A stretch of DNA of 64,000 nt from the NCBI RefSeq assembly GCF_964204645.1, contig NC_134032.1, forward strand, positions 15,798,275 through 15,862,274, in the 5' to 3' direction. Positions 1,844 to 40,663 of the stretch are shown here, in pieces. This DNA is from Tubulanus polymorphus (Eukaryota > Animalia > Nemertea). Each line of letters begins with the position of its first letter. Within the stretch, counting starts at the first letter, position 1. A program made the translations under genes and the position numbers. Below the pieces are notes generated by a model that was not told the origin of the DNA, made no database searches, and saw only the letters and a program-made list of their open reading frames with translations.

Positions 1844-1909
1844 AAAATGCCAAAAACAAGACGAATGTGGGAGGGTGGCCCTGCTGCCACTTCGTCCCCG
1901 TATTCACCA
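1844..1909 (+). CDS. Exon 1 (66 nt, ATG at 1847): MPKTRRMWEGGPAATSSPYSP
   Basis: ttttttag|AAAATGCC...TCACCA|gtaagt. The acceptor implies a further upstream exon (5'UTR, or coding if 1847 is internal). Confidence 0.8.
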
Positions 1910-4900
1910 GTAAGTTCAAATTTAAACGTCTAATTCTTCTCCACGGTGACCGACACTATTTTGTACATAGTTTTGTATTAATATATTGATTTATTCATAC
2001 CATCCGTGTTAAATACCGAGTCTAAACAGATCATTTATTTTTCATTCAAATTGCTAACAAAAATTTAAAAAAAAAGAAAAGAATTTTAAGATAATGTTGG
2101 TGAAATTGTTGTGGATCGACAAAGTGTATCGTTCCCCTAAATATCAATATTCTGTAAAATGATGTATAGATGATACTAATTGTTTATCAAATGTTTGGTT
2201 GTCATTGCATGAATATGTTTTTCTCTCTTTTCTAGCAAACAAGAAGGCGCCACCTTGACGAAAGGGCGGAACAAGAGGCCAACTTGGACCGGATAGGTGA
2301 GCGGTCATTTCAACCGGTAAGTTTAAATCGGTAACGAGTCGATTTTGCTAGCATGTCTCTTACTTAACTACTTGTAACACAATTACATCATTTTGGTAGC
2401 TTTAACTTCTTGATTAAGTTCAAAAACTCAAATGTAGTTATAAAATCTCGGTTCCTTTCATTGTTGGTTATAATACGAGGCTTAGCGATAAGACGGGCAC
2501 TTATTCATACGCGTAGGCAGCTAGCGTCTTTCAGTTGAGTAAACCGGTTCATCCTACGTGAACTGCGGTTTTTGCCATCTATAAAAGTTATGAACAAGTT
2601 AAAATTATGAATTCTCATCTGATAAACGTCAACTAAGGCCACACCAAAAAAAATCCGGTTTCTCTGGCGGGGCAATCACCAAAATGAGTAGGTCGGTAGG
2701 GAATTTTTTTTTCTTTTTATAGAAAAAAAAAAATTTTGGGTTCTCTTCTAACAGTGGGTAGGTCGCCGTAAATAATTTTTGATGGGACCAAATTTCCAGT
2801 TGAAAATATGATTAGCAGCTTGTCGATGACAATAATAAAGGGAAGTTGATGTTTTTGTATTATATTTCACACTTGGAAACCGTTTATAAAACGAAAAACA
2901 TCAAAATCTTGCATAGGCATATAATATATTGTATACGGAATTCCTGGAATTATACAATCCAAGGTCGCCATCAATATGTGATTGGCAACGTTATCTGAGC
3001 ACACAAGTACCATATCCATTATAAAATTGTTAAATCCAATGTAATAAGATATTTTTATCATGTCGTCTCGGTGCCGACATCACGATTTCACGAAAAAGAA
3101 AAAATATTTACGAGAATGGAGAGCTTTGTAGTCGGTCGGCCATATATATATTTTTGAAAAATAGTTATTTCATCCACAATTTTGAAATAGGGTCGGTAGG
3201 CAATTTTATTTTATTTCGAAAATAATTATTTGAAATGTCGAAATATCGGGTCGGTCGGGCCCGAGAAACAGGGTTTTCTTTTGGTGTGGCCTAAACTTTA
3301 AGTTGTCTTAGTTTTAGTTGCTCTATGTCGTCCTCTCTCAGTATTCAACATTTGTTGAGTCTTAAAATTCTCGTTATCATTAATCTTTCAAAGATGTTAT
3401 GCAAGCAGTTTCACATTGACCAACATCGAGTTCATTTTAAGAAATTTTTTGCTTGTCAAATTTTCTGATGGTTGCATCAATTACACTCTGTTCTCAATTT
3501 CACAGTAATTAATGATTTTTTTTTTCAGTTTGAATTGACGCCCCCGGTCCAAGTTGAGCGCTCGGAATTCTCCGGTGACTGGGTAAGTTACAGCGAAATA
3601 CGGTTGAAGTCAATTGTTGGAACAAATATTAAACCCTGGATATTTTCACGAAATTGACTTCGCTTTGTTTGCTATTGAAATTTTTTTCCATCATTATATT
3701 GGTGGCGCCACCAAGGGGGCGTTTTGTTAAAACTGATATGCGAATTCGTAGAAACAATTGATAGGTATTGGTAGAATAACCCATACTCAAATGTGGAGAA
3801 CGGATAAGATGAAAACCCACTACAAATAAAAGTTAAAAATTGAGAATTTATTAAATTTAAAAACAACCGATCTCACGTGAGACAATGATCTCTAGTGTGA
3901 GATCTCACGTGAGACAATGATCTCTAGTGTGAGTTCGAAACGTCGTGTTTTTCAATTTTAATTCGATTGAATATTGATGTGGGTTTCATCTTGGTAAATT
4001 TGGTATCCTTCCCCCAATTTTTTGTTATTGAGGGAATTTTCGCTCGGATGAACGGGGTTGCCACCAGGACCTAGTTCCACAGTTGTGAGTTAGAGTTAAA
4101 TCTTGAGTTAAAATCAATTCATTTCCAATGAGTTAATTCTTAACTCGAAACTGGGCTTGAACTCTGAATCATCATCAGAAATAGAATATACTTAGATGTC
4201 TGGAATGTCAGCCATTTCAATCAACGTTTCGGCCAAAACCGATATTTGGTGGTCATCTTTGTTTTTCGTTTTTGCTTCTGAAAATGGTCCAAATTAAAAG
4301 TTTTTTAACAGAACTCCCGTCATAGGATTTGAAAAATTTTGAAACTTTGTACAATACTACTACTAATAAGCATTCATTTTTTTTTCTTCATTGCCAACAG
4401 GTGTGATTTTACTTGAAAAAAATACTACATTTTGTCCATTTTGGCCAAGTTTTAGAGTTTTTAGAACAGGACCTCATCTTAAATTCATTGCGTCAGATTT
4501 GTGCGTGTTGTTTTGGAAAATGACAAACATGATTGTGTCACCCGACCTGTGTACCATCATAAACCATGTCCTTATCCTCGAATCTCCTTGCTACAATCTG
4601 AGCGGATGATGTTAAAAAACGACAAAGACAGGACCGCCAAAAACTCTAAAACCGTGTTTACCGAATCAGAAATCAGATAATCATCATAATCCATTTAATT
4701 GCATAATAAAAGTTAACTCTCATTGTATTTTCAGTATGTTCCCCCTACACCACCGCGAAGGCGCCAGACGCTGGTGAGAACACCGGTAAGTTACAACTAT
4801 TCTCTAATAAACAATACTTATTTTGATTTATTAATTTGAAAATAGTGGGCAGTAGCTAGTTTGCATAAATTATGTAAATTAGAAATAAAATCATGGATTT

Positions 4901-7900: not shown

Positions 7901-10900
7901 GTTATAGAACTAGAATGAGCTTAGACTGGTCTTAAGTTGTTAGATTGTTTATAGAACTAAAATGAGTTTAGACTGGTCTTAAGTTGTTAGATTGGTTATT
8001 GAACTAGAATGAGTTTAGACTGGTCTTAAGTTGTTAGATCGGTTATAGAACCAGAATGAGTTTAGACTGGTCTTAAGTTGTTAGATTGGTTATAGAACCA
8101 GAATGAGTTTAGACTGGTCTTAAGTTGTTAGATTGGTTATAGAACCAGAATGAGTTTAGACTGGTCTTAAGTTGTTAGATTGGTTATAGAACTAAAATGA
8201 GCTTAGACTGGTCTCAAGTTGTTAGATTGGCTATAGAACTAAAATGAGTTTAGACTGGTCTTAAGTTGTTAGATTGGTTATAGAACTAAAATGAGCTTAG
8301 ACTGGTCTCAAGTTGATAGAATAGTTTTAGAATTAAAATGAGCTTAGATTGGTCTCAAGTTGTTAGATTATTTATAGAACTAAAATGAGCTTAGACTGGT
8401 CTTAAGTTGTTAGATTGGTTATAGAACCAGAATGAGCTTAGACTGGTCTTAAGTTGTTAGATTGGTTATTGAACTAGAATGAGCTTAGACTGGTCTTAAG
8501 TTGTTAGATTGGTTATTAAACCAGAATGAGTTTAGACTGGTCTTAAGTTGTTTGATTGGGTATTGAACCAAATTAGTTTAGACTGGTCTTAAGTTGTTAG
8601 ATTGGTTATAGAACTAAAATGAGTTTACACTGGTCTTAAGTTGTTAGATTGGTTATAGAACTAAAATGAGTTTAGACTGGTCTTAAGTTGTTAGATTGGT
8701 TATAGAACTAAAATGAGCTTAGACTGGTCTCAAGTTGATGGAATAGTTTTAGAAATAAAATGAGCTTAGATTGGTCTTAAGTTGTTAGATTGTTTATAGA
8801 ACTAAAATGAGTTTAGACTGGTCTTAAGTTGTTAGATTGGTTATAGAACTAAAATGAGCTTAGACTGGTCTCAAGTTGATAGAATAGTTTTAGAATTAAA
8901 ATGAGCTTAGATTGGTCTTAAGCTGTTAGATTGGCTATAGAACTAAAATGAGCTTAGACTGGTCTTAAGTTGTAAGATTGGTTATAGAACCAGAATAAGC
9001 TTAGACTGGTCTTAAGTTGTTAGATTGGCTATAGAACTGAAATGAGCTGAGACTGGTTTTAAGTTGTAAGATTGGTTATAGAACTAAAATGAGTTTAGAC
9101 TGGTCTCAAGTTGATAGAATGGTTTTAGAATTAAAATGAGCTTAGACTGGTCTCAAGTTGTTAGATTGGTTATACGTAGAACTTAAGCTGGTTATATAGT
9201 CTAATTGGTAACTAAATCAACTTCTTAATTTGCTTTATAGTCCAAAAACCTCTATCATAATTACTGGTTTTGTACAAATGTCAGAATTTGCTACAAAATT
9301 TACTAATTGTTCGTTAAACAGTTTTAATGAAGAATCTATGATACATGCATTCATGAATATCCATCTAATATTTTGTTTTATTTTATCTTTACAGGACATA
9401 ACACCAATTGATAAAACCGACGTAAGAGTTTAAACATTTATCTTGCAATTTAACATCTTGCAATTAAAACTAATTCATGCAATTTCAATGTTGATATTTT
9501 GATGATACATTAATATTTGTATTTGATAGAATATACTGATTGACAGTGCTTTAATGAAAACCTGACAATAATAATGGTCAATTCAATTTCTTTTAATTTT
9601 ACAACATCATTATCATTTTAGCTGCTTCGGCTAGAAATTTGCCATTTCACCATACTACATACTTAATCAAATAATAAAAAAAGTGATTTCTTGCTTTGAA
9701 TATTCATCTGAATCTATTGTTGAAAATCAATTGTTTGGCAAGTGAAAAATTGAAGTTAGGAAACAAAATTTTAACCTCGTTGCGTACCGGGTCATGTTTA
9801 AGATCCAGAATCCCGGGATTTTTTGGAAAATATATGAGTGAAATCCCATTGAACAAAGCTTTCATCAGTACGCCTGACATTTCGACATTTCGACATTGGC
9901 TAATATAGTGTAGCAGAAATACATATACATGTTTACATTTCTAATCAAGAATTTTTACATCTTTAGATTATTGTGGGATTTCTCTCATGTACACGTATAT
10001 CTTTGCATGTTTTTATTTCGGTTAATTTTGACACAATCAAAGAGTACATGCTTATCAAAGTCTTGAAACTTTAAACATTGTGTCTTCTATCAAAACTTGG
10101 TTGAGATGTGCTACTCAGATCAGCATTTGGATTTTATTTACACTCCCACTAAAACGTGAGCGGTGCCGTCTGTAGATATTCTATTTGTTCACAAGTGGCG
10201 CCATCTTTAAAGATGAGATGAATACCCATCAATACCAGCCAGTTAAAAATTCGCGAATTTCAGTCAGTGGAAAATATTGAACCCGATTAGAATTTCGGGT
10301 AGCAATACCCAACAAGAGATTAATAATATCGACAAGGTCTTGCTCTATGTTTCCAGATGACATACGTGTAGAGTTTTGAATTAAAAATGAACGGTACTAA
10401 GTTTTTGAACCCTCTGAACTCAAACTACGGATTGCCCAGGATACTTCTCTCTTCAATGAAAACCAGCACGTTGAACTAACTAACCTCGGAATAGAAATAT
10501 TTAGAAATTCAATTCTTAATAAATTTGACTGATGTGTTTATATTGTTGTCTTTTCTAGAGTTCGATGTCGATGTTGTCGGTGTCGGTATCACCGCCAATT
10601 TCAGCTGTAAGTATAAATATCAGTAAAGCTCCTGAACATGCGAAACTTTTTATCTTTCTATATAGCTAATAACATCAAGCTGTAGCTTAATTATGAAAAG
10701 GTTCCGCGTTAGGAAGAATTTTGTTGAACCAATAGAAATATTTAATTTCAACATGTAGCATCACGCCATAAACCGGAGAACTGCATCAAATTGTGCGAGA
10801 TCATGATGTCCTCCAATTTCCCTAGTGTCCGGGGGGGGGGAGGGGTTAGGGCCGGGGGGTGGTATTAGATAGATAAATCATCAATCTTATCTCAGTTTAA

Positions 10901-12276
10901 CCCTTTCAGTTCGTCTACACCGCAGTGCGGTGTATAAATCTGATGGATTTTGCTAGTACACCGCACTGCGGTGTATTGATGTAATTAGTAATTTGTAATT
11001 ATCTCTATTGAAAAATGGCAGCAAGTTTCAAACATAGTGAAATACTAGTACCTAACGATACACCGCACTGCGGTGTAGACGCACTAGGGTGGAATTTCTA
11101 AAAATTTTCAAATTTTCTCCAGCACTATAGGGTATTAATTAGTCAGCCCTGAAAGGGTTAATAGATGTCAGTTTCTTCGTACTAATAATGCAATAATGCA
11201 GCGTGTAATGTGTAGATTAAAATTGTCTTCTGTGAATTTGTATATTCTTCATTAATTTGAACTTATTTTATCTTTTTCAGACTTCAGGATTTGACATACC
11301 GTCCTTTCCGACGACCTTTGGAGCAGTAAGTTACAATTCTAGTTTGATGTTGTTCACTGACTGACTCTCTCTACGGATTAGATTTCTAGAAGAATCCAAA
11401 ACAAATTTCTAGTGTAAAACATAAAACTATTGAAGCCGTGAGACAATTTTTTATTACAGTAAATTTTTTCTGATCGATAAAACGATAGGCTTTCAATTTA
11501 TAATCAACTCTAAAGAAAGGTTCGCAAAGCATTTTTTCGCTGAAAATGAATTTCTACATTTGATCACGGATGACCTTCGCCCAACCTTGGATATTTTGGT
11601 TGATTTTCTTTGGCCACGCCGAACACAGGTTTATCAAAACTTAAATCTGGCTGTGCGCTTCACCAAGTTTCGACTTTGACGTATTATGCTTAATAAACTA
11701 CGCCGAAAAAGCATTTTTTAGCACACTCAAATGCAATTTCAGAAGCCTGTAATTTCACTACTAATGGGCAAATTGAACGGATTAAGCAAAAATACCTTTC
11801 TTTCTTAATTTGTTTTTCTTTATGGTGCCAAAGTTGAAAGTTGAAAGCCTTGGGTTTCATATATTTTGGGAATTTTACCAAAAATGGTAAAGAATTTTAT
11901 GTATTTTATCATGTTTTATTTATGCTGCATCTTTAACTGTCCAAAATTACACATGTGAACATTCAATATTATTTGTTATTAGAAGTAAGCTTACTTGTGT
12001 CGAAATCTGACGTCTTGTTCAGTTTCTAGGGGTTTTCTCGAAATTTCTGGTTCTATATAATTTGTGTTGACCCTGTTTGACCTCCCTCCAGCGCATGTGT
12101 ATTAAACAAAATGGTGGCATGATAGAATCGGTTGATATTCATAATTTCTGGCGCAATTACTGATACTCAAGGCGCATACAAATTTGGGTTCAAAATAACG
12201 AATAAATTTTTGTTAACTTCGGCTCGGTGATAACTTTAAGTACACTGGTGTCAGCAATATGGCCATGTGCACGACG

Positions 12277-12347
<71 letters not shown>

Positions 12348-15300
12348 ATGTTTATATGGTTTATAACAATTCAACTCATGATTTGACTAATATATTTATG
12401 TTGTTTTCATTTGTAGATTGAACAATATCCTTCCGGACAGACGCCTGTCATCAGTTCTGTAAGTATAGATACCAAGCACCTTTCCTCCTTGCATCTGATT
12501 AATAAGAGGCAAAATGATCCAATCAAAGAACTGCATTGAAAATTGTAAACTAATTGGGCTCCTGAATTGTGGACTAATTGGGCTCCTGAATTGTGGACTA
12601 ATTGGGCTTCTGAATTGTGATTTTTGAGGTTTTTGATTTCCCGCACAAATGAAGGTTACAAATTTTACAGAAATTTGCGAGAAGAAAATCGGAATTCAAT
12701 TTTTTGCACTGGGAATTCGCCCTGTAATCTAGCTTCAAATTGTGTTCTATGAATTTCAAATTGTGATAACAATGAATATTTTTCATTAATTTGTATTTAT
12801 TTTATTTTCTCCAGATTTCTTACAACCTACATGTGACGCCATCTCCGCCGATGAGACCCGTAAGTTATAATTATACTCTGATATTTTGTGTTTTATTGGA
12901 TCTAAAAGATTATCAGTGAATTATATCTCCCAGGTAGAAACTCAGGTCGAACTTCGGTTTTCGTTGCTAGTCGACTAGTGGTCGGAACTAATAACCGAAC
13001 ACACTATAGTTCGGTCGTAACGTATTTCACAGTGCCGGCCATCTTGAACCTAGGTCCGAACTGTAGCGACCGTGCTCAATCGCGTGGTCGACCATTACCG
13101 GACTATAATTCCGACTAACGGACATTCGGTTTCACTTAGTTCGACTATAGTCGACTGACTCCGATAACCGAAGGTGGCCTTGGGTGTTTGTATCTAGTCG
13201 ACTGATGGTCAGAACTAATAACCGAATGCGCTTAATTTCCGAATCATTTCCAGACCAGAGTTCCTACTAACGGACATTCGGTTTCATTTAATTCTACTTT
13301 TTAGTCGACTAACTCAGATAACCTTTCACTCTGTATCCGTCGTGCGCCATCACCTGACACCTCATTACAGCCAATAATTCTTGCGATTTCCATCTGTTGT
13401 TTTTCAAGCAACCACCAAGCAATTGATCGCTTGGCATTTCCTGTGTGCTATCACTAGAGATGGAGAGGCAATTAGCTTTCCCGCCAAATTGGAAGTATCA
13501 CATGATAATTATCCACTCATTCATTGGCTAGTTGATGAGTTGCTCGTCGCTTGGCATCTCCAGCTACGGCACACGGGCAACTCCCGAGCGATCGGTGAGC
13601 AATTTTCTGTCGCCCGATATCGTTTCATATTTGAAGGGGTTGACCTGAAAATTGGACTGGGCGCTCATTATGAAGGGGGCAGATTCTGCTTGTGAGGGCT
13701 GCAACAGGGCAACAGTTGTGGGCTTATTTTGGGCCCAGCATATATAGGAGCAAAAGGGGCATTTTATGCCATTTGGATTTATCGTTGATTCCTCAATTTT
13801 TTAATATCAAAGAATAATTTTTGAATTACACCAGTAAGATGAACCTTAATTTTCCAATCAATGTGACAGGTGTCCAGGTCTACATACATTTCACAAATGA
13901 ACGTCCTTTTTTAAAGTTTCTTTCGTCGATTTTTTCAAGAAATTTGGAGGGCGAGGGGAAAAAATTATCTGTTTATTTTTTATGATAGGCATTTTTAAAT
14001 TGAAGGAAAAAAATAACAATAATAATAAATAAAAACTGAAAAGTTAGATAGAATTGATGAATGCAGTTTCTCACACTAAAAATGCAGCGTGTAATGTGAT
14101 TGAAATTGTGTTTAAGAATTTGTATATTCTTAATTAATATGAAATCGTTTAATTTTTTCTAGAATCAAAGCATGGATATCGTAGATCCGACGCCAGATAT
14201 CGGACCTGTAAGTTAATAATTCTAGTTTGATGTTTTTCTGTGCGTGTTAGGACAGTATCAGTAATTGATAAAATATGTTATACTCGTCTTGAATTTCAAA
14301 GTGCGATTTCTATATTTTTCATTAATATGAAATCCTTTTATTTTTTCTAGAATCATAACAACATTCCGGTGCAGCGGTCGCCCGTTCAAGTGGTAAGTTA
14401 TAATTCTAGTTTGATGATAGTTCACGAAAATAAGAAATGTTTCCTTCGAGTACTGCATTGATAGTTTTTGCGAATATTCTCTGAATTTTGAATTGAACGC
14501 CAATGATTTTTCTTACAACCGTTGGCACTGTGGTATTGCATTTAGCCGCTGGCAATGTCTAACATCTTTTGTCTTTCTGCGATCCTTTTGTCTCTCTGCG
14601 ATCTTGAGTCGAACACAATTTGGATCGTACATTCTTAATTTGGGATTTAGGAGTTTTGCCTTCTGTAATGAGTTAGTACGATACGACTTGTTATACTTAG
14701 TTAATGGTATTGATGCTTAGCTTCGGTACTTACATCATCAGATGCATTGACCAGAAAACAGAAGTAACGTAACATATAAACTTACAGGGAGTAAAAAAAA
14801 AAGCAACGTGTCAGAATAAATGTAAACAGAACAAGTGACAAATGAGAACAACCAGGGGCCGGTTGCATAGTCATGGCTTAGACTTAAGACCGTTCTAAGA
14901 CCAACTTAGTTCTATAGCTAATCTAACAACTTAAGACCAGTCTTAAGATTTAAGACCACTTTTGGACTTAAGTCACGACTGTGCAACTGGCCCCAGGGGT
15001 ACCGTAGAAACCACAGAATTCTATAAACAGTTAGGATGAATACAAATTATGTAACTGAGTGGAGTAGAAGTGGATGGGGATAGCAGTGTGGCACATAAGC
15101 CGCGATCACACAGAGACGATTTGGCCCGGGCCAAATTGGCACCGATCAGGCTCGGGCCAAATTTGGCCCGTGCCTAATTAGAGAGCGCGTTCACACGCAA
15201 ACCATTCACTCGATACTAAACAACGCTTAAACAAAGGGAAGTGGATCATTTCCGGTGCGAGTTGCTATTCAAACGCAATCGTTTGTCTGGTGCTAAAATT

Positions 15301-18300
15301 TGGCTCTGACCTGGTCCGACATTTTTGGTCGGGCCAAAAAGGCTCGGGCTCGGGCACCAGTGTGAACCGTTGGCCAAAAATGCTCGTGCGATCGCGGCTA
15401 TAGTGACATTAACCAAAATCTAATAGAGAGTTGATATGTCTAGATAGTAATTGATTATGCCAGGGCAGCCATCTTGAATTTGTTGTATACCCCGATACAG
15501 CGGACAATTCATGATGAAATGTCATTGGAGAATTGGGACGGGTAAGATGTGCAACCCTATTGAAAATAGAGGTCATCAAATATGGCGTCTAGGGTGGTCA
15601 TCTGCGCGATACAGCCTATAATTCTTGATGGATTACTAAAGAACTTGGTGTGAGAATATCAGTTGTTTACCCATATCAAAAATGGAGGTCATCGGCCATC
15701 ACAAATATGGCCGCCAGGGTGGCCATCTTTAATTTCTTAAGCCTGGCGCACACGATGCGATTTCCATCTGTTGTTTTTCAAGCAACCACCAAGCAATTGA
15801 TCGCTTGGCATTTCCTGTGTGCTATCACTAGAGATGGAGAGGCAATTAGCTTTCCCGCCAAATTGGAAGTATCACATGATAATTATCCACTCATTCATTG
15901 GCTAGTTGATGAGTTGCTCGTCGCTTGGCATCTCCAGCTACGGCACACGGGCAACTCCCGAGCGATCGGTGAGCAATTTTCTGTCGCCCGATATTGTTTC
16001 ATATCGGGTGACAAGGAACAAATCCTTTTGACAACTCAGGCGGTTGCTCAAGAATTGCTCAAAAACGTCGCACGTTTGGGGGCTATAGCATACAACGTCT
16101 ATAACTATGGTCTCATCAATGAATACACTAATGACAGGATGGCTTCCATTTGAGACACACGTTAGCATCCTGAAAATTAACTTCGATGATTTTAATTAAT
16201 ATGTAACTGAAATTGTAAAGGAAATGATGATGACTACTTTCGGTCATGAAGAGAAATACCTTGTTTTGGGTGGAACCTTTCTTTAGAGTTTATTAGAAAT
16301 TGAAATTTGTTTGAAATTTCAAATGAACTCTGAAGATGAATGGAAGTGGGATTATCCCCCCCCCCCGAAAGATAAGGAAAAAAAAAGCTGTTGTTGTAGA
16401 TCTATATTGTGGTTTTTCTGTTTGTGGGCCTAGTGTCCCTGGACTCCTAGTTAGTTTGTGCTATTTATACCTTTTTCGTAACTTATGGAAAATATCGAGT
16501 TATTGGAAGAAATATAATATTAATGAACTACCCAACAGCAATGGTTATAAACAATGGTTTTATTGTCGATAGCCATCTATATACAATGAGTTAGACTGGT
16601 CTAAATGGGTCTGCACCAGGTCCCTTCCAAATTTGGACTTAGTCTGAATTTGCATTCACGCACCCGTTGCTAAACTGTTATGACTGGACTTGCCATAAGT
16701 ATTTTTCCCTGAAATCTCTAAATGATAATTCGTTAATTTTTACGCAAAATATAAATTCTTGGAAATCTTAAAACTATATAAATCAGCTCGATGACGAATA
16801 AGTGATGAGTTTAATACAATTGAATCTATACTGCATAGTACAATTTAGAATGGCACACATTTAGTCTGGTCCAAAATCTGGACCTGGTTTGCTTTTTAAA
16901 ATCTAGGTCGGTTCAAATTAGACTGGTCTAAAATGGACTGGAGTAATTTGGTAAGAACTCTTTGCCTGTGTGAATGCTTGGTCCGGTCTAAATTGGACCG
17001 GACCAAATTTAGACCTGTCTAAGTTATGTAGTGTGAACGCGTCTAGCTGGTATAGAAATCTTTCGAAAAAGGATAAATTCTGACCAAACTGCAGAATTGA
17101 TTAAAGCAATTCTAAGACAAATTCTCTATGCAAGTGAGGTACAGTGGCCAAGTGTTTAAGCAGCTAGTTGCCGCTTTTTTCAATCATGGCCGCGGAGTTT
17201 CTTGATCAAATGTTCTTTTCTCTGGTCAATCTCCCAAATTAGTTAGGAAAAATCGAGAAAAACGTATGTTTCACAAAGGGGCACCTTAAATTATGGATTT
17301 CTGTAAGAAAACTAGTCACATTTGATTAATTTTTCAAATCATTTTATTTTTTCTAGAATCAAAACAACACTCCTCCGGCTCCGGCCCCGGTGTTTGCAAT
17401 GGTAAGTTAAAATAATTCTAGTTTGATGATTTTCAGTACAGTTTGTGTTGGGGTGAATTATCTAACTGATAATAGATGTTAAACCGATCAATATCGGTTT
17501 GAGTTTTTCATACTGAAAATCTCATATTAAAATTGTAGTTCCTTGAATTTCAAAGTGTGAAATATGAAATCATTTTATTTTTTCTAGAATACAATCAAAC
17601 AAGAGTTGCCGTCACCGACACATGACGTAAGTACTAATTCCAGTTTGATGTTTTAAGTATTGACCCAATAGACAGCAGAACGTCCCTCAACGTTTGATTT
17701 TTATCTCCGCTGTACTATAGCGCCACATAGTTTGAGGGGGTCAGAGTTCAAACTTTTGACCAATGATTGACCAAATCTATACAGCAATAAAAAGCCTGTA
17801 TAATTATCTTCAAAATAACCAATGGTTGTAAAGCATCATTTTCAGTAGTTTTCATACTGCATCTCTGCTTAATCTTTATGTGCAAATTCAATCGGCTAAT
17901 TAAGCGTTTGTTATTCTGGAAATTATATATGAAGTCACTGCGTCTAATGGGTCTAAACCAGTATCAGTAACTGATTATACGTGAATTTCAAATTGTGATA
18001 ACGATGAATATTTTTCATTAATTTGTATTTATTTTGTTTTCTCCAGATATCTTACAACCTACATGTCACACCGTCTCCGCCGATAAGACCCGTAAGTTAT
18101 AATTATACTCTGATATTTTGTGTTTTATTGGATCTAAACGATTATCAGTGAATTATATCTCCCAGGTAGAAACTCAGGTCGAACTTCGGTTTTCGTTGCT
18201 AGTCGTCTAGTGGTCGGAACTAATAACCGAACACACTGTAGTTCGGTCGTAACGTATGTCACAGTGTCGGCCATCTAGAACCTAGGTCCGAACTGTAGCG

Positions 18301-21300
18301 ACCGTGCTCAATCGCGTGGTCGACCTTACCGGACTATAATTCCGACTAACGGACATTCGGTTTCACTTAGTTCGACTATAGTCGACTGACTCCGATAACC
18401 GAAGGTGGCCTTGGGTTTTCGTATCTAGTCGACTGATGGTCAGAACTAATAACCGAATGCGCTTAATTTCCGAATCATTTCCAGACCAGAGTTCCTACTA
18501 ACGGACATTCGGTTTCATTTAATTCTACTTTTTAGTCGACTAACTCAGATAACCTTTCACTCTGTATCCGTCGTGCGCCATCACCTGACACCTCATTACA
18601 GCCAATAATTCTTGCGATTTCCATCTGTTGTTTTTCAAGCAACCACTAAGCAATTGATCGCTTGGCATTTCCTGTGTGCTATCACTAGAGATGGAGAGGC
18701 AATTAGCTTTCCCGCCAAATTGGAAGTATCACATGATAATTATCCACTCATTCATTGGCTAGTTGATGAGTTGCTCGGCATCTCCAGCTACGGCACACGG
18801 GCAACTCCCGAGCGATCGGTGAGCAATTTTCTGTCGCCCGATATCGTTTCATATTTGAAGGGGTTGACCTGAAAATTGGACTGGGCGCTCATTATGAAGG
18901 GGGCAGATTCTGCTTGTAAGGGCTGCAACAGGGCAACAGTTGTGGGCTTATTTTGGGCCCAGCATATATAGGAGCAAAAGGGGCATTTTATGCCATTTGG
19001 ATTTATCGTTGATTCCTCAATTTTTTAATATCAAAGAATAATTTTTGAATTACACTAGTAAGATGAACCTTAATTTTCCAATCAATGTGACAGGTGTCCA
19101 GGTCTACATACATTTCACAAATGAACGTCCTTTTTTAAAGTTTCTTTCGTCGATTTTTTCAAGAAATTTGGAGGGCGAGGGGAAAAAATTATCTGTTTAT
19201 TTTCTATGATAGGCATTTTTAAATTGAAGGAAAAAAATAACAATAATAATAAATAAAAACTGAAAAGTTAGATAGAATTGATGAATGCAGTTTCTCACAC
19301 TAAAAATGCAGCGTGTAATGTGATTAAAATTGTGTTTAAGAATTTGTATATTCTTAATTAATATGAAATCGTTTAATTTTTTCTAGAATCAAAGCATGGA
19401 TATCGTAGATCCGACGCCAGATATCGGACCTGTAAGTTAATAATTCTAGTTTGATGTTTTTCTGTGCGTGTTAGGACAGTATCAGTAATTGATAAAATAT
19501 GTTATACTCGTCTTGAATTTCAAAGTGCGATTTCTATATTTTTCATTAATATGAAATCCTTTTATTTTTTCTAGAATCATGACAACATTCCGGTGCAGCG
19601 GTCGCCCGTTCAAGTGGTAAGTTATAATTCTAGTTTGATGATAGTTCACGAAAATAAGAAATGTTTCCTTCGAGTACTGCATTGATAGTTTTTGCGAATA
19701 TTCTCTGAATTTTGAATTGAACGCCAATGATTTTTCTTACAACCGTTGGCACTGTGGTATTGCATTTAGCCGCTGGCAATGTCTGACATCTTTTGTCTCT
19801 CTGCGTTCTTGAGTCGAACGCAATTTGGATCGTACATTCTTAATTTGGGATTTAGGAGTTTTGCCTTCTGTAATGAGTTAGTGCGATACGACTTGTTATA
19901 CTTAGTTAATGGTATTGATGCTTAGCTTCGGTACTTACATCATCAGATGCATTGACCAGAAAACAGAAGTAACGTAACATATAAACTTACAGGGAGTAAA
20001 AAAAAAAGCAACGTGTCAGAATAAATGTAAACAGAACAAGTGACAAATGAAAACAACCAGGGGCCGGTTGCATAGTCATGGCTTAGACTTAAGACAGTCT
20101 AAGACCAACTTAGTTCTATAGCTAATCTAACAACTTAAGACCAGTCTTAAGATTTAAGACCACTTTTGGACTTAAGTCACGACTGTGCAACTGGCCCCAG
20201 GGGTACCGTAGAAACCACAGAATTCTATAAACAGTTAGGATGAATACAAATTATGTAACTGAGTGGAGTAGAAGGTGATGGGGATAGCAGTGTGGCACAT
20301 AAGCCGCGATCACACAGAGATGATTTGGCCCGGGCCAAATTGGTAGGGATTAGGCACGGGCCAAATTTGGCCCGTGCCTAATTAGAGAGCGCGTTTACAC
20401 GTAAACCACTCACTCGATACTAAACAACGCTGAAACAAAGGGAAGTGGATCATTTCCGGTGCGAGTTGCTATTCAAACGCAATCGTTTGTCTGGTGCTAA
20501 AATTTGTTCTGACCTGGTCCGACATTTTTGGTCGGGCCAAAAAGGCTCGGGCACCAGTGTGAACCGTTGGCCAAAAATGCTCGTGCGATCGCGGCTATAG
20601 TGACATTAACCAAAATCTAATAGAGAGTTGATATGTCTAGATAGTAATTGATTATGTGGCTGGAGATGGTAGATGAGTTGGATTTCGAAAGTTTACAAAT
20701 AAGGGCTGATTCCACTGTGTCTCTTATGGATGTCTTTACAAGGATAAATGAGAGTTTCGAATTCTGAAACTCAAATTGGTGGTTGGTCGTAAAAACATGA
20801 TTTGCTGTCCCCACTCTCAGGCATTTGATTATGGATATCTACTCCATGTTCCTTAACACGTTGACTTAAGATTGCGACCTGTTTCACCGATGTACATCAT
20901 GTTACAATCGTTACAGGGTATCTGATAGACCCCAGACTCGATGAGCTTACTATTCAGTTTGTTTTTAGTTAAAACAAGATTATTATGATGATTATTATGA
21001 TTATGATGATTACTTATTATGATATTGAAAGCCTAATCTAGAGTCAATGGTGCTTAATGTCGATTTGAAGCGTTCCAAAGTGGGTAAATCCGGGATCATA
21101 ATATTCTTTTGAGCTCTGCATTTTGTGGTCAAATCTGTACATCCGAAGTGAGAAGTCCTGGCTTTAAAATATGCTATGTTCAAAATCCTTTCTGGGTAAG
21201 AGCAGTCTTAATATGTTTGATTTCATTATCTAAAAACATTTGATGACAAATACGAAGAGCTCGAAGAAATAATCCTTGGGCTATCCCGATTTAATGTTTA

Positions 21301-27002: not shown

Positions 27003-27092
<90 letters not shown>

Positions 27093-33000: not shown

Positions 33001-36000
33001 ACATTCAGGTTCAGTGAGTCAAAGCTTTTAAGCACCGAGTAGAACTGGGTCTTCCAGAAAGGACTTTGTGCCCAGTGCAGGCTTTATGTTTCTATTTGGA
33101 TCGCTTGGCGTCCCGGACGGGTTCGCCCCCCCCCCCCCCCAGAGGGGCTAACTCGATCGGTTTTTCATTTATCCACTCGATCACCTGAAAGGTGACATTT
33201 CTCGAGACTCTGAGGCTCGCTGGGTCTCATCGTTAATTAAGGACATAGGAAAGGGTGAAGTACTCGAAGGAAATATCACAATTTTTGGAACAAAAATTTG
33301 GTGGCAGTCCCGCCCTCCTGCCCCGCTTAGCGGTATTGTGTGACTGCTTTAGTGAAATTAGATGGCGCGTATTACTGTGGCTAAATGCAATTACACAGTG
33401 CCAGGGGTCGGTTCGAAAAATCATTGGTAATGATTCTAAATTCAGAGCATATTAAAAAAACAAACATATAAAAGGGTACCTCGGAAATACAAATTTTAGT
33501 TTCAAAATTTAAAAAATATTGGTAATCTTAATTGGTATTTAGCATGCCAGATCTACACATTCATTTGAAAACTACTGTGAACTACTGAGTCATGATTGCA
33601 TTTTATGTTCCATTCATTCATATTTCATTGTTATTTACAGAACTTCCAGACCCAGGGGGTACCGCTGCACCGGCAATCGGCCGAAACTCGTGCTCGAAGT
33701 AAGTTCAGTTTACAAATTCAATCTGGTTCAATCTATTTTCATCTGATAGTCGCGACCTGTTTTTATACAGACAGGGTCAGTAAAAGAAGATGTGAAATAT
33801 TATCATTCATCTCTTATGCGGCGCTTTATGGTTATTTTTGACTTTGTTGTGTGCGGGAATAACTTGCTCACAAAATGCTGTGAATCAAAATTTGCCTTTT
33901 GCATATAAAATGCTCTGTGCGATTAGTGCTATTTAAGACTTTAAATTAGAAATCAACGTTCGGTATATTTTCGCTAAAATTAGTTCCATGCGAAAAATTC
34001 CATTATTTAACTGAATTCGGCACTGCACATTTATAATAGATTCTTAGTATTAGACGTGCTACCTATGAGCGATTATCTCAATTACAAGCAACATTAATTT
34101 CATTAGAATGGCCTGAAATACCATGAAGTGTCTGCATTCCAAATTTCTTCGGAATAGAAACAGTCGTCTCAAACTTAAAAGTTTTAGAAAAACACAAATC
34201 CACATTTGGGTCAGCTCTTGATCAAAACTAGTTTTGGAAATGTTGTATGTGATAATTAATTGTATTTTTTTCTTTACAGCTATCAACACTTTGTTAGCGC
34301 GAGAGATAGATGATGAGGAGTTTCTGGACATATTTCTGCCTCAACGTAAGTTGGTAGTAACTATTTTCATACCATATCCTGTGATCCTATCAAAAAGTCA
34401 TAAAAGGTCAAGTGCCCTCTAAATAGAATACTTATTCTTTCTTTAAATTTTATATGTGTGTAAATGATAAGTGTGTTGCTAATTTGGATTTTAGTAAAGC
34501 CATTACTGAGAAATAAGACTTAAAGTCGGCTATTTTCACCAGCTTCCCGCGTTTACTGTGAAAAACCCAAGATTGCTGATGTCGTTGTAGTCAAACACAC
34601 ATTTCCACACACGTCGTACCATTGAAGAATAACAAACTTTTGATGCGCTATATGAATGCTATGGCAAACTAATACTAGATTCGATTTAAAACAATGAACT
34701 TAGTTTTATTATATAGATTTTAAAACAACCCTCAGTGAAATAAGCAGTGTAAATCTGAAATAATCCACTACTGTCTGTTACACATGCTCTCCGTGCGACG
34801 TTTTGGTCCGTAATTTCGTTAATAATCGGTTTATCTACCTTTATTAAGCATCAATTTGTTCAGTGAGGAATTTGCATTCAGAAATAAACAACAATTTTCA
34901 CTTAAGTTGTTTTTGTTTTCATTTATGAGCGATAGTTTACTCAGCATACGCTCGCGTAATGCTGAAAAATCAGCTCCGCGGACGCTCGGAAACGTTACAG
35001 TGACGTCATCACCTGCTCATTAGCATATCAAAATACAGTAGGTGGCGCCACGTGACGGGCCATAAAAGTCGTTTTTCAGCATTCCGCGAGCGTATGCTAG
35101 GTAAACTATCGCTGATAGAAGAAAACACAAACAAATTTCTGCCAGTTCATGATTTATTTCTGAATGCAAATTCCTTACTGAACAAATTGATGCATAATAT
35201 TTACAGATCAACCGATTATTAACGAAATTACGGACCAAAACGTCGCACGAAGAGCATGTGTGACAGACAGTAGTTTCCAGTCTCTAATCGCGCACCACAT
35301 AATCACCATTCATAGCATATTTAATCCTTTTAGAAGTTGTTTAAGATTCCTAAATGCTTTCTGATGATACTGTTGATACTGTTACACATAACACAACAAA
35401 CATACAATGTATAGCCAGCAGTAGAGCTGTGAATATAGTGAAGAAATGATGTATAGATTTTATATATAGACAATGAGTACTGAGTTCACACACGTGTATG
35501 TTTGTTTGGCAAAAATGACGCATGAATGTGGTGCTGACACGCGGCTGCGGCCGAGGTGCTTACGCTATATCGGTCAATGATCCAGTTATTTAATTTTACT
35601 GATTTAAGACAAATAAGTGATTTTTTTTCTGCAAGGCTGATCCCAGATCGTTATTTTATATACTTAAGTATCTCTATAAGTAGGAATTAGAGGACACTTG
35701 ACCTTTAACCTCACTGTTTGGAGCGAGGGAAGTTTATTCATTTTATGTTTTAATGTATTTTTTTTAAATTTACAGTAACTAATATCATGATGGAGTGTGA
35801 ACACAGGAACAAAATTCAGGATTTCCTTCGAACTTTCGTACCACAAGGCATCCCACCACCGGCTACTCCACCCGCTGCTGCCCCTCCCCATCCAGTACAG
35901 GGTAATTCGCCTCAGCAGCGGCCCCTCAGACAGCCGCCCCCTGGAGCAAAACGTCATTCCACTAGATTGATGGGGCGGTCGTTTGAGGGAGAACTGGCGG

Positions 36001-39000
36001 AGGTAAGAATTTAAATTTTTCTTTGTATTTCATTAAACAGAAAGATGAATTGAATTCTATGATTTGAATTTGTGTGTCATTCTACAGTTTATATCGGTTG
36101 ATTTTCAGCAAACATTCTATTTATACGTCTAGTTTGTGACTAATTTAGCAAAAACGATTTGATTCGAAGTATGAATAAACGTTTGCTGAAAGTCGATCGT
36201 GTATGTTTAACCCTTTCAGTGCTGGCTAATTAATACCCTATAGTGCTGAAGATAATTTTGTTAGTAATGTTTTGAATAACGGGAATAGCACTATAGTGCG
36301 TCTACACCGCGGTGCGGTGTATCGTTAGTTACTAGTATTTCACCATGTTTGACAGGTGCTGCCATCTTTGAAGGGAGATAATGAGTAATTACTAATTAAA
36401 TCAATACACCGCAGTGCGGTGTACTAGCGGTGTACTAGCAATATCCATCACTGATTCATACACCGCACTGCGCTGTAGACGCACTGAAAGGGTTAACCCA
36501 TTAGCACTCAGCAATTTCACTATGTAGTGTCAATTACTCCTCACAAAATTCAAGATAAAAGTTTTGTAGTAAATAGTCGAGGCTTTCATCTGATATAAGA
36601 TTTGATGAGGTGGGCCACCAAAATCGTGTCCTTTTGGCCCCCCCGAAATTCATCCAAACTTCCTCGGATTTGAAGTGAGCGCTCAGATGTGTCATGTTCA
36701 TACTCTAAATACTCGAGAAATTGAGATAGGAGGATGTTGATTTCTGTTCGATATTTCGAGGACTTAGGTGTGTAGATTGTTATAAGCTATCGGGTTCGAA
36801 TCCCACTATAACCGTTTTTGTGCTTTATACGAAAAAAGTGCCGGGCGGATACGGGCGGCTTGAGGAGTAATAGGCAGGGCGGATACGGGCAGCTTGAGGA
36901 GTAATAGGCAGGGCGGATACGGGCGGCTTGAGGAGCAATAGGCAGGGCGGATACGGGCGGCTCGAGTGCTAATGGGTTCATTATGAGCATGATCTTCGAG
37001 GTCACATGGCCTGGTCCGTGATTGGCTGAAGAACTCGTTTGTGAACAGGTCATCCAAATATCGGGTGTGTCTATATCATATCACTCACAACCACCTTTTT
37101 TGGGCTAATGGGGGCTTAGGTCTAATTCCAATTCAGTGGCTCTAACGCATGCGCACGGAGGTGTACGACTTAGAAAATTCAACCAAAGTCGAAAGTTGAT
37201 TAAGAGAAAATTGAGTGGAAAGAGTGAGACGCGAACCCGGGTCAATAGATCGCTAGCGTCACGTCTCCTCGCTAGACCACGGAGCTCGACGAAATCCCAC
37301 CGATTGTTTTAACTACATATAGCCTCACCTTACCCTAATCCTAACCCTACGGGGAAAACGGAACCCTCTGGACCCTCTACTCACCCTCTTGAGGCGTTTT
37401 CTGACCCTGTATTAGTATCTATATTAGTATATTTCATTATATATAGAGGGCAGCAGAATCGATGGATAGGATCTTGCCATCAATAGGTAGTTAGTGAGTG
37501 ATACGATATCGTCAAACCCCTATCATCTAAATATTTCAGATATTTCTAGACAACATACAATTTTATTATGGACTTAAGCTTTTGAAAAGTCCATTTTGTT
37601 ATCGCATATGAAACTTTCATGCAAAATAACTTCCGAACGAGGCTTAGTTTCTCTTCGGAAGTTTCAAAACATTCAATGCAGTTATAAAATCTCGAACCCT
37701 ATTGAATTTCATCGGAATCCGTTAGTTATTTATTTGTTGTTGGAACTAAATTTTGTTTGGGAATAATAATGCGCCTCGCGTGTGGCCCAAAGTTTTCTTG
37801 GAAACTGCAAATGATACAACCGCCAGGGTTCAAAGCAGGGTGCAAAGCAGTGAATTTTATAGAAGGGCTGTAAAATTGGGAACTTGGAAATTGTTAAATT
37901 TACGAAAATAGATTGTCCAACAAACTTCGTAAACAGCTATGAAAAATGATATCATCACACTATGAACGTGGAATGTCTATTTGAGTCAGTGGCGAAAACC
38001 CACTAACCATGTACATTGATTATGAATCATTATGCAGTTGTGCTGATTATCACATGTATATAGTGTCAATTCACGCAGATCGTAGACAGATTTTCATAGA
38101 AACTTCTGGATTCAATCAAGGGGTGGATATCTTAGGCTTTTTTGATTACTTGTAGCGCGGATTCTCCGAAATTCTGCCAAAAACTTCATGCCGGGGATAG
38201 TTATGCGATTCCATTCACCTTGAAAAAAAAAAGAAATTTTCGATCTAATTACCTGTAAAAAGTCAGTTTTCTTCCATCATTTGAATTCAATCCAATAGTT
38301 TTCACTTTTTTTTCATTTGTTCTGCTTATAATCTCTAATTTAGAGAACCGTACCAATGTTTAATTTTGATGCTGATTAAACATACACTCATGTAATTTAG
38401 AAAAGTCCATATTAACAATTTCGTTTCTTTTTGTAACTTGTCAGGATATTGAAATCTTGGCATTTGCTGGCCTTTACAAGTTGTGCTGTTGACCACTGAT
38501 ATCTGTATTTGTATAGTGGTCCAAGCTGATTCTACTGCATCAGATATAAATGCAGGTGTGCTTGTGATGTTTCCAGCCATTTTTATTCTCCAAATATCAT
38601 GTTTGATATTTTTTTGAATAACATAAGTTTATACTTTAACAAATGATTCGTTCAGAACAATCGTGTATAAGATGAGTTAAATCTCGTCAAACGGAAACTG
38701 TAATCAATTGGTCCCAGAAGTACCATGTCCCTGTTCTAACCGACACTTTTTCATTGATTGAAATGTACTTTTTCAAAAAAGCAAATCAGTAAAAACTGTT
38801 GGTTTTTATAAATGCTGAACTCTTAGTTTTGCTGCCGGAAATGACGAGATATCCTCATTACTTAAAGGTGTTAATTGTTGGATTCCAGATTTTATAATTC
38901 TGATTTTTGTATTTTATGCTAAACAAAATTTTTCATTTTTTCTCTTTACAGACACGACCACCTCCTAAAAAGAAAACCAAGCGAAAAAGGAAAGCTCCGG

Positions 39001-39344
39001 TCGTCGTGGCTCCCCAGGGAGGGGAAGCAAGAGTTGCCCCCGTGGTTGATGAGCCTATTGAAGGTAATCAGGAGGACGGGGCAAGGGTAGATAGGGGGAA
39101 GAGGCCGAGGAGGGATGGTGGTGGGGCTGGGGATGGTGCGGGTCCTGCTCCTCCTGCTCCTCCATCCGTATCTCGGGCGGTCACTCGTTCACTCGCCAAA
39201 AAGCTGGCGAGTGAACGAGTGGCCCGAGAGGTAGAGGTGGTGGCCCGGCATACGGATGGAATGTGGGAGGAGCGGCTGCGATCTGGGACAATTCCGGATT
39301 TGTTGACGGATTTGAAAAATATTCTTTCAGTGAAGGGATATTAG
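1847..39344 (+). CDS. Spliced 20-exon micro-exon-array gene, about 500 aa, largely disordered, probably nuclear protein of unknown family
   Basis: Twenty GC-richer islands, each bounded by a polypyrimidine-AG acceptor and (except the last) a GTAAG[T/A] donor. They splice into one stop-free frame, with phases 0 x16, then 1, 1, 0. Start is AAA-ATG at 1847; stop is TAG at 39342-39344. Confidence 0.85.
2236..2316 (+). CDS. Exon 2 (81 nt): QTRRRHLDERAEQEANLDRIGERSFQP
   Basis: cttttctag|CAA...CCG|gtaagt, phase 0-0. Confidence 0.8.
2637..3291. mobile_element. MITE with GGCCACACCAAA TIRs and TAA TSD (PIF/Harbinger- or Zator-like)
   Basis: taa|ggccacaccaaa ... tttggtgtggcc|taa. Confidence 0.75.
3529..3582 (+). 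CDS. Exon 3 (54 nt): FELTPPVQVERSEFSGDW
   Basis: tttttcag|TTT...TGG|gtaagt, phase 0-0. Confidence 0.85.
4735..4785 (+). CDS. Exon 4 (51 nt): YVPPTPPRRRQTLVRTP
   Basis: ttttcag|TAT...CCG|gtaagt, phase 0-0. Confidence 0.85.
5241..9175. repeat. 47-bp satellite, about 84 copies, inside intron 4
   Basis: Unit GAGTTTAGACTGGTCTTAAGTTGTTAGATTGGTTATAGAACCAGAAT. Confidence 0.98.
9395..9421 (+). CDS. Exon 5 (27 nt): DITPIDKTD
   Basis: tctttacag|GAC...GAC|gtaaga, phase 0-0. Confidence 0.7.
10559..10606 (+). CDS. Exon 6 (48 nt): SSMSMLSVSVSPPISA
   Basis: cttttctag|AGT...GCT|gtaagt, phase 0-0. Confidence 0.8.
10901..11157 (+). mobile_element. piggyBac-like MITE (TTAA TSD, CCCTTTCAG TIR)
   Basis: ttaa|ccctttcag...ctgaaaggg|ttaa; internal TACACCGCAGTGCGGTGTA palindromes; inverted copy at 36211-36492. 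Confidence 0.85.
11281..11325 (+). CDS. Exon 7 (45 nt): TSGFDIPSFPTTFGA
   Basis: ctttttcag|ACT...GCA|gtaagt, phase 0-0. Confidence 0.85.
12278..12345. repeat. (TA)n microsatellite
   Basis: Visible. Confidence 0.95.
12417..12458 (+). CDS. Exon 8 (42 nt): IEQYPSGQTPVISS
   Basis: tttgtag|ATT...TCT|gtaagt, phase 0-0. Confidence 0.8.
12815..12859 (+). CDS. Exon 9 (45 nt): ISYNLHVTPSPPMRP
   Basis: ttctccag|ATT...CCC|gtaagt; paralog of exon 14, differing only at third codon positions. Confidence 0.9.
14163..14207 (+). CDS. Exon 10 (45 nt): NQSMDIVDPTPDIGP
   Basis: ttttctag|AAT...CCT|gtaagt. Confidence 0.85.
14351..14392 (+). CDS. Exon 11 (42 nt): NHNNIPVQRSPVQV
   Basis: ttttctag|AAT...GTG|gtaagt. 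Confidence 0.85.
14856..14993 (-). mobile_element. Harbinger-type MITE (GGGCCRGTTGCA TIR, CAG TSD); copies at about 20061-20197 and 27707-27842
   Basis: cag|gggccggttgca...tgcaactggccc|cag at all three loci. Confidence 0.85.
17357..17401 (+). CDS. Exon 12 (45 nt): NQNNTPPAPAPVFAM
   Basis: ttttctag|AAT...ATG|gtaagt. Confidence 0.85.
17588..17626 (+). CDS. Exon 13 (39 nt): NTIKQELPSPTHD
   Basis: ttttctag|AAT...GAC|gtaagt. Confidence 0.85.
18047..18091 (+). CDS. Exon 14 (45 nt): ISYNLHVTPSPPIRP
   Basis: ttctccag|ATA...CCC|gtaagt; duplicate of exon 9. Confidence 0.85.
19387..19431 (+). CDS. Exon 15 (45 nt): NQSMDIVDPTPDIGP
   Basis: Identical duplicate of exon 10 with intact splice sites. Confidence 0.8.
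19575..19616 (+). CDS. Exon 16 (42 nt): NHDNIPVQRSPVQV
   Basis: Duplicate of exon 11 (one N>D change), intact splice sites. Confidence 0.8.
20617..21400 (-). mobile_element. Decayed Penelope-like retroelement (RT C-terminus plus GIY-YIG endonuclease)
   Basis: Minus-strand translation across frameshifts: LKFSVYRKPTNAEAYLHF, GLFLRALRIC, YPERIL, GVYQIPCNDCNMMYIGETGR (20874-20933), QRVKEH, ANHVFTTNH, RDTVESALI. Confidence 0.9.
22540..23355 (-). mobile_element. Decayed CR1/L2-group LINE, RT fragment interrupted by an insertion
   Basis: GVP*RSILGP (about 23354), MFADDTN (about 23285-23305), WFCANSLSLN, KFLGIQIDSSLNWKSH, SYCNIIWGNT. Confidence 0.85.
24498..24842. repeat. Dispersed repeat of about 340 bp; near-identical copy at 38083-38425
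   Basis: Direct sequence match. Confidence 0.9.
26983..27090. repeat. (TA)n microsatellite
   Basis: Visible. Confidence 0.95.
27574..27702. mobile_element. Second Harbinger-type MITE, abutting the copy at 27707
   Basis: Imperfect TIRs ggagccagttgctgaaaagttggtta / taaccaacttttgagcaactagtccc. Confidence 0.65.
29030..29750 (-). mobile_element. Decayed LINE ORF2 fragment (N-terminal part of RT)
   Basis: IIAKPLA*IVNNSFQNGVMPDVLKTSKVIHLY*KGDK and HYRPISL on the minus strand. Confidence 0.85.
30318..30478 (-). mobile_element. Second copy of the 458-617 MITE
   Basis: Reverse-complement match; TSD GATTT. Confidence 0.8.
33641..33698 (+). CDS. Exon 17 (58 nt, phase 0-1): NFQTQGVPLHRQSAETRAR(T)
   Basis: tttacag|AAC...CGAA|gtaagt; phase matches the next exon. 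Confidence 0.8.
34280..34345 (+). CDS. Exon 18 (66 nt, phase 1-1): INTLLAREIDDEEFLDIFLPQ(L)
   Basis: tctttacag|CT...CAAC|gtaagt. Confidence 0.85.
34771..35270. mobile_element. Foldback MITE with TIRs of about 200 bp and TA TSD (Tc1/mariner-like)
   Basis: ta|ctgtctgttacacatgctc...gagcatgtgtgacagacag|ta. Confidence 0.8.
35776..36002 (+). CDS. Exon 19 (227 nt, phase 1-0): TNIMMECEHRNKIQDFLRTFVPQGIPPPATPP...KRHSTRLMGRSFEGELAE
   Basis: tttacag|TA...GAG|gtaaga; matches ORF 35787..36014. Confidence 0.9.
36211..36492 (-). mobile_element. piggyBac-like MITE (same family as 10901-11157)
   Basis: TTAA on both sides, CCCTTTCAG TIRs. Confidence 0.85.
36497..36976. mobile_element. Second piggyBac-like MITE with a 34-bp subterminal tandem repeat
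   Basis: ttaa|cccattagcactc...gagtgctaatggg|ttca; GGGCGGATACGGGCGGCTTGAGGAGTAATAGGCA x3.5. Confidence 0.75.
37220..37288 (-). other. Degenerate tRNA-derived (SINE-head-like) segment
   Basis: Minus strand: A-box-like TGGTCTAGCG and B-box-like GGGTTCGCGTC at tRNA spacing. Confidence 0.4.
38952..39344 (+). CDS. Terminal exon 20 (130 aa): TRPPPKKKTKRKRKAP...RAVTRSLAKK...EERLRSGTIPDLLTDLKNILSVKGY*
   Basis: ctctttacag|ACA, GC-rich, in frame with ORF 38907..39344; basic NLS. Confidence 0.9.
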   Translation, partial: TRPPPKKKTKRKRKAPVVVAPQGGEARVAPVVDEPIEGNQEDGARVDRGKRPRRDGGGAGDGAGPAPPAPPSVSRAVTRSLAKKLASERVAREVEVVARHTDGMWEERLRSGTIPDLLTDLKNILSVKGY

Positions 39345-40530: not shown

Positions 40531-40663
40531 TTAATTGGGTAATTTCAGAACAGTCAACATTTTAAGCACATTAAAAGTTTTTATTTATAGAATTTGACAG
40601 AACTATGAGAACCACATAGGTACACCTATTTTCTGTCTCGATCGATATGTTATCTACTTGAAT

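Follow-up and report, generated by a model that had tools for sequence, protein, structure and literature searches.

In the PEVK region of titin and in the fibrillar collagens (with their 54/45-bp exons), each symmetric exon codes for a single short repeat module, the proline-rich protein being disordered or extended, and in titin PEVK, which is intracellular, exons are extensively skipped. Treacle (TCOF1) and Nopp140 reside in the nucleus and are disordered over much of their length; they have a nuclear localisation signal (NLS) at the C-terminus and central repeats that take one exon apiece and carry clustered phosphorylation sites. The micro-exon genes (MEGs) of Schistosoma contain 10–20 very short exons, mostly multiples of three in length (6–81 bp) and separated by introns of 0.1–5 kb; their proteins always have a signal peptide, are secreted and reach 189 amino acids (aa) at the longest, and the genes are multi-copy, fast-evolving, lineage-restricted and overlooked by automatic annotation (PMC10526429). 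Here, we describe a gene of the nemertean Tubulanus polymorphus in which 16 consecutive symmetric micro-exons stand before four ordinary 3′ exons. It lies in a window of 64,000 nucleotides (nt), which is the whole stretch of DNA that was analysed (NC_134032.1, positions 15,798,275–15,862,274, + strand; coordinates given without a contig are window positions). We read the locus, at a probability of roughly 0.7, as an intact 20-exon gene of an orphan, lineage-specific, tandemly amplified family with a non-secreted, probably nuclear modular product.

The gene spans 37.5 kb and has 20 coding exons. A first-pass annotation, made from the sequence of the window, had proposed the 16 symmetric micro-exons, each with an AG acceptor and a GTAAG[T/A] donor, joined to four 3′ exons of phases 0-1, 1-1, 1-0 and 0-stop into a protein of about 500 aa. 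When the sequence was searched for AG acceptors with a pyrimidine-rich tract and a GTAAG donor behind them, all 16 were recovered on the + strand where they had been placed, with exactly the same lengths and with a pyrimidine-rich AG acceptor and a GTAAGT or GTAAGA donor at each exon. The four 3′ exons were likewise all present with those phases, and the joined frame, which opens with the ATG at 1847 and closes with the stop at 39344, amounts to 500 codons (1500 nt). Counted from the acceptor at 1844, exons 1–16 measure 66, 81, 54, 51, 27, 48, 45, 42, 45, 45, 42, 45, 39, 45, 45 and 42 nt (range 27–81 nt), all divisible by three and open in frame 0. They are separated by introns of 143–4609 nt, and the symmetric micro-exons supply 51% of the coding sequence. 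The reading frame is open throughout the 20 exons, and 38/38 splice dinucleotides are canonical. The exons are as follows, with counterparts in paralogues C (C8:16.31 Mb), D (C8:15.14 Mb) and B and with the word cassette marking copies of one exon-plus-flank unit.

1844..1909, + strand: exon 1, of which 63 nt are coding, beginning with the ATG at 1847; paralogues C, D and B have a homologous first coding exon (MPK..SSP..)
2236..2316, + strand: exon 2, 81 nt, phase 0-0, basic/acidic
3529..3582, + strand: exon 3, 54 nt, phase 0-0
4735..4785, + strand: exon 4, 51 nt, phase 0-0, with TPP/RTP sites; 51-nt counterpart in paralogue C
9395..9421, + strand: exon 5, 27 nt, phase 0-0; counterparts of 27–30 nt in paralogues
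10559..10606, + strand: exon 6, 48 nt, phase 0-0
11281..11325, + strand: exon 7, 45 nt, cassette type with conserved flanks
12417..12458, + strand: exon 8, 42 nt, phase 0-0
12815..12859, + strand: exon 9, 45 nt, cassette, recent twin of exon 14
14163..14207, + strand: exon 10, 45 nt, cassette, with exon 15 as its identical twin
14351..14392, + strand: exon 11, 42 nt, cassette, with exon 16 as its twin
17357..17401, + strand: exon 12, 45 nt, cassette
17588..17626, + strand: exon 13, 39 nt, cassette
18047..18091, + strand: exon 14, 45 nt, cassette, copy of exon 9
19387..19431, + strand: exon 15, 45 nt, cassette, copy of exon 10
19575..19616, + strand: exon 16, 42 nt, cassette, copy of exon 11
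33641..33698, + strand: exon 17, 58 nt, phase 0-1; 61-nt counterpart with the same phases in paralogue D
34280..34345, + strand: exon 18, 66 nt, phase 1-1; 66-nt counterparts with the same phases and an EEF..FLP motif in paralogues C and D
35776..36002, + strand: exon 19, 227 nt, phase 1-0, proline-rich, with a conserved terminal R.S.R..GR..EG.L.E motif
38952..39344, + strand: exon 20, 390 coding nt plus the stop

For exon 19, a weak in-phase acceptor at 35848 was rejected for the one at 35776, which has a long pyrimidine tract; the 227-nt form was adopted because the 24 extra residues that it encodes are conserved in paralogues and the whole 75-residue translation was matched. Since an AG acceptor (1842–1843) precedes exon 1, a non-coding 5′ exon probably lies upstream. 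No further hidden cassettes were found in the 14-kb intron 16, and no other genes were recognised at window positions 42–64 kb. The probability of 16 consecutive exon lengths divisible by three arising by chance is about 2e-8. Within the first 42 kb, GTAAG[TA] sites number 31 on the + strand vs 12 on the − strand, and candidate exons of a length divisible by three number 18 vs 2; a conserved motif of the downstream flank occurs four times in the window vs zero expected.

Comparison between copies showed that the sequence is coding. Paralogues C and D retain the exon order 1, 2, 4, 5, 6, cassette, 17, 18, 19, 20 with the same phases as the window gene and canonical splice sites, and exons 17, 18 and 19 in the paralogues keep their phases and change length only by multiples of three (exon 17 differs by 3 nt), which argues for a coding sequence. 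The flanked exon 5 was recognised with 77–84% identity in 5/5 paralogue regions, and the 16 cassettes with conserved flanks in the window gene and the fetched paralogues all measure 33, 39, 42, 45 or 51 nt and have no stop in frame 0. This comparison upheld the view of the first-pass annotation that the gene is real and spliced and would be overlooked by annotation based on open reading frames (ORFs). Selection on the protein was most evident at its end, in the following segment.

39144..39341, + strand: C-terminal 66 codons, the sole strongly constrained part of the gene

These last 66 codons differ from eight other copies by 3–8 synonymous and 0–1 non-synonymous changes, and from the C6/C3-type copies by 7–8 synonymous and no non-synonymous changes (neutral probability about 1e-4). 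The proportions of synonymous (pS) and non-synonymous (pN) differences were 0.25 and 0.09–0.13 in the first half of exon 20 (pN/pS 0.4–0.5), and 0.42 and 0.27 in exon 19 (pN/pS about 0.6). Within the gene itself, exons 9 and 14 differ at five positions, 5/5 of them third codon positions, with four synonymous changes and one Met to Ile. The same pair (12815–12859 vs 18047–18091) is 11% diverged in the exon vs 1.8% in the flanking intron; micro gene-conversion is a possible cause of this excess.

Searches of the animal's own 268-Mb genome revealed the extent of the family. The 130 codons of exon 20 gave 117 matches, comprising about 34 intact close copies (6 on contig C8, about 18 on C6 and about 10 on C3), 9 intact distant copies that are near-identical among themselves and dispersed on C9, C11 and C8, and about 50 further matches that are fragments or carry stops. 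Exon 20 of the window gene is 87–90% identical overall to the 34 close copies and 99–100% identical in the C-terminal domain; identity to the nine distant copies in this domain is 44%, and exon 19 is recognisable there. Exon 19 itself gave 59 matches, with all 75 residues matching in intact copies, and it co-occurs with exon 20, always 0.7–3 kb upstream. The family is defined by a last exon with an acceptor, a basic run, a low-complexity spacer and a 55–66-residue C-terminal domain ending in GY, and by a penultimate exon of phase 1-0 and 227–236 nt with the R.S.R..GR..EG.L.E end; the window gene has both. An N-terminal MPK... exon followed by symmetric micro-exons was found in the window gene and in paralogues B, C and D. 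The search for paralogous loci thus returned close as well as distant copies, and what had been presented as a single hidden gene belongs to a family with over 40 copies. We also used retrocopies as a proxy for splicing; no copy of exon 19 abuts a copy of exon 20 among the 59 and 117 matches, so that no retrocopy records the splice.

Tandem family arrays were located at C6:1.05–1.75 Mb, with a period of about 33 kb, and at C3:0.42–0.74 and 1.25–1.33 Mb, with a period of 43–70 kb; in both, the intact copies are interspersed with inverted fragments of exon 20 that carry stops. On C8, ten tandem modules of exon 1, intron 1 and exon 2 (15044609–15066266, − strand) are spaced by 2.2–3.5 kb and 85–88% identical, with no matching 3′ exons alongside, and these could be alternative 5′ exons or truncated genes. 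A second C8 array (15155000–15172300, + strand; loci L025–L026) consists of seven tandem 2.7-kb units, each with an exon-1-like acceptor, one 45-nt cassette (NTTLDS/D-T-I/V-PLSPVRP) and a truncated exon 20 (residues 1–91).

The predicted product has 500 codons, of which 14.7% specify proline, and 20 Ser/Thr-Pro sites. In its central region, each phase-0 micro-exon contributes a module of about 15 residues, and at least one Ser/Thr-Pro site was present in 13/16 micro-exons, mostly in the second half of the module. The N-terminus (exons 1–2) has a hydrophilic, basic composition and no hydrophobic core (hydropathy over 9 residues peaks at −0.2), in agreement with the earlier statement that the protein has no signal peptide. 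The clear NLS that had been claimed was also borne out by a strong basic run that is kept in the paralogues.

38952..38999, + strand: basic run of nuclear-localisation type, PPPKKKTKRKRKAP, at the start of exon 20; lysine/arginine, classical nuclear-import type

Every close paralogue retains this run; in the distant subfamily, a run of arginines takes its place. Database searches and folding were done exon by exon. An AlphaFold model of exon 20, made with nine paralogues, had a mean predicted local distance difference test score (pLDDT) of 53, and four short helices were predicted with low confidence in the C-terminal 55 residues. Pfam gave nothing above threshold for exons 1, 2, 18, 19 and 20, a phmmer search of exon 20 against 1.84e9 representative proteins gave 0 matches, and a search of the ESM Atlas by features gave no usable match. 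A profile search of the PDB returned IFT57 (E=0.11), which was dismissed as noise, and nothing else. As far as sequence comparison reaches, the family is an orphan whose relatives are known only in this genome.

Alignment of the micro-exons with their flanks revealed how the array was assembled. Exons 7 and 9–16 all stem from a single cassette of exon and flanks. Within the older members of this set, identity is 70% over the 50 nt preceding the exon and 79% over the 30 nt following it, vs 38% in the exons and 21% in sequence further out. The most recent copies are carried by two blocks that are 97.2% identical across 2710 nt.

12750..15459, + strand: duplicated block, first copy, holding exons 9–11
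17982..20656, + strand: duplicated block, second copy, holding exons 14–16

The word depth in run X1 (the best DNA run) was 62–66 in the block vs 24 in single-copy intron, and this raised depth argues that the duplication is not an assembly artefact. At window positions 13634–14421, the X1 depth was 2.6 times that of single-copy intron rather than 2.0 times, perhaps because the animal that was sequenced is heterozygous for the copy number of the block. A 249-nt segment at 13382–13630 is repeated at 15756–16004 (100% identity) and corresponds to 18613–18861 at 76% identity; it lies within a 167-aa ORF (15650–16153). Exact cassette flanks are restricted to C8:15.07–16.33 Mb. About 10–11 exons were counted in paralogues C and D, 5–6 of them symmetric micro-exons, vs 16 micro-exons in the window gene, and module number varies between gene copies via DNA duplication and loss. 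Because each cassette is of phase 0-0, such changes in cassette number never break the frame.

Under our preferred reading, the product would combine a basic N-terminus with a proline-rich centre that is probably disordered, a conserved NLS and a small, constrained, helical C-terminal domain. The array grew by tandem duplication of cassettes together with their flanks, with a latest step in which three exons were added. The protein would act as a nuclear substrate or scaffold phosphorylated at many sites, with module number tuned mainly at the DNA level, and in-frame exon skipping could add variety at the RNA level. Several points weigh against this reading. Nuclear localisation, disorder and phosphorylation are all deduced from the sequence, and the structure model is of low confidence. 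Some family members are decaying, since many copies are fragments or carry stops. Gene conversion, beside selection, may partly explain the low synonymous divergence in the C-terminal half. By evolutionary evidence the gene is intact and protein-coding; its expression, its 5′ untranslated exon and all of its junctions are predictions. Three runs matching the locus, queried with a mostly intronic 5.9-kb stretch, were DNA-like and showed no GT..AG joints.

An alternative explanation is that the locus would be an intracellular MEG-type system in which exons 2–16 are skipped in many combinations, giving a large isoform repertoire from one gene; we consider this unlikely, although it survives better than the other alternatives. 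The first-pass annotation had pointed out that any subset of exons 2–16 can be skipped in frame, and this holds, since all are of phase 0-0. The exons are also very short (27–81 nt), and conservation is far higher in the cassette flanks than in the exons, as is common around regulated exons, but the recent common origin of the cassettes explains the conservation of the flanks, and the near-perfect donors and strong pyrimidine tracts fit constitutive inclusion equally well. Regulated neural micro-exons of the eMIC/SRRM4 type have a UGC motif close upstream of the 3′ splice site. No such enhancer motif was present in the 25 nt before any acceptor of the array (TGC in 0/16). RNA stems looping out the cassettes were considered and rejected, as no significant structure was found around the cassettes (z-scores of −1.9 to +0.4, no compensatory changes). 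Splice-site strength and the absence of UGC motifs and of structure bear only weakly on the question of skipping; the variation that is visible lies between gene copies, in DNA. A more far-reaching version, to which we assign a somewhat lower likelihood still, is that in this ampliconic family each cassette would be a proline-directed phosphorylation module of a nuclear disordered protein, with module number set by unequal crossing-over together with regulated in-frame skipping. This would amount to a combinatorial system resembling the MEGs but intracellular, for which no counterpart is known except in the secretomes of flatworms.

It is improbable that the gene is the cargo of a repeated or mobile element or of an ampliconic region, with a copy number owed to amplification of the region and not to the function of the protein. 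The periodicity of the C6 and C3 arrays (about 33 kb and 43–70 kb), the inverted broken fragments within them and the spread of nine near-identical distant copies over C9, C11 and C8 would fit such an origin. However, the C6 unit that was sampled had no transposase or reverse transcriptase ORF, ORFs of this kind occurred only in introns of paralogue A, where they resemble ordinary insertions, and the tight constraint on the C-terminal domain points to a functional protein. We give equally little credence to the idea that the family is functional and the window copy an unexpressed duplicate that has yet to acquire disabling mutations. Many family members are indeed fragmented or carry stops, and the disordered parts evolve fast (by the pN/pS ratios of exon 19 and the first half of exon 20), but every exon of the window gene is open with canonical splice dinucleotides throughout, and its newest duplicated exons differ at third codon positions only. 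Finally, short exons can be open in several frames by chance, but chance splice-like sites in the absence of a gene have next to no probability, being excluded by the 16 consecutive lengths divisible by three, the strand asymmetry, and the conservation in paralogues with length changes only in threes and synonymous-only divergence.

The gene and its surroundings are rich in repeats. A 47-nt satellite in intron 4 (5241–9174; about 84 copies, 91% matches) causes the strong GC skew seen at 6–10 kb. Intron 2 holds a repeat of about 660 bp (2634–3294) with at least 25 copies of 85–94% identity on many contigs, and short inverted end matches suggest a candidate element with terminal inverted repeats, resembling a miniature inverted-repeat transposable element. 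A 311-nt dispersed repeat, 97–99% identical, occurs in intron 16 (24537–24847) and intron 19 (38121–38432). A 76-nt array (914–1501) lies directly upstream of exon 1. Downstream of the gene, arrays of 38, 16, 411, 119, 28, 21, 28, 52, 46 and 263 nt occupy 39954–51608, and a 53-nt array was found at 58920–62356.

Compared with the known systems, the window gene shares with the MEGs an array of very short exons, divisible by three in length, between ordinary end exons, and membership of a multi-copy, fast-evolving, lineage-restricted family. In contrast to the MEGs, it has an NLS and no signal peptide, its product is 500 aa long as against at most 189 aa, micro-exons make up only 51% of its coding sequence, and its host is free-living and not a flatworm. 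No sequence similarity to MEG proteins was found by Pfam with five exons or by phmmer with exon 20, the micro-exons being too short to search alone. The description of the locus as MEG-type therefore stood for the micro-exon architecture and failed for membership of the MEG family, which is argued against by the lack of a signal peptide together with the conserved NLS, as well as by the length and the absent similarity. With titin PEVK and the collagens, the gene shares symmetric phases that let exon number change without loss of frame, but its modules are Ser/Thr-Pro modules of 13–16 residues instead of PEVK or Gly-X-Y, there is no homology, and its protein looks nuclear whereas titin is sarcomeric and collagen extracellular. 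Treacle (TCOF1) and Nopp140 resemble it as disordered proteins of nuclear type with one exon per repeat module; however, their repeat exons are about 200 nt long with acidic casein kinase 2 (CK2) sites that are not proline-directed, and they are single-copy conserved genes whose products have no sequence similarity to the window protein. The likeness to MEGs, titin PEVK and collagen is limited to the principle that one symmetric exon equals one module, and the gene is a member of none of them.

To our knowledge, textbook accounts of symmetric micro-exon arrays are confined to the secreted MEGs of schistosomes. In the window gene, this architecture would give rise to a non-secreted, probably nuclear disordered protein; its host is a free-living animal of another phylum, and its family, with more than 40 copies, forms large tandem arrays. 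This family illustrates the gain and loss of modules by DNA duplication, with the frame kept safe by phase-0 cassettes, and it adds a set of real genes that ORF-based and homology-based annotation would overlook. Should combinatorial skipping prove true, it would be the first intracellular system of that kind.

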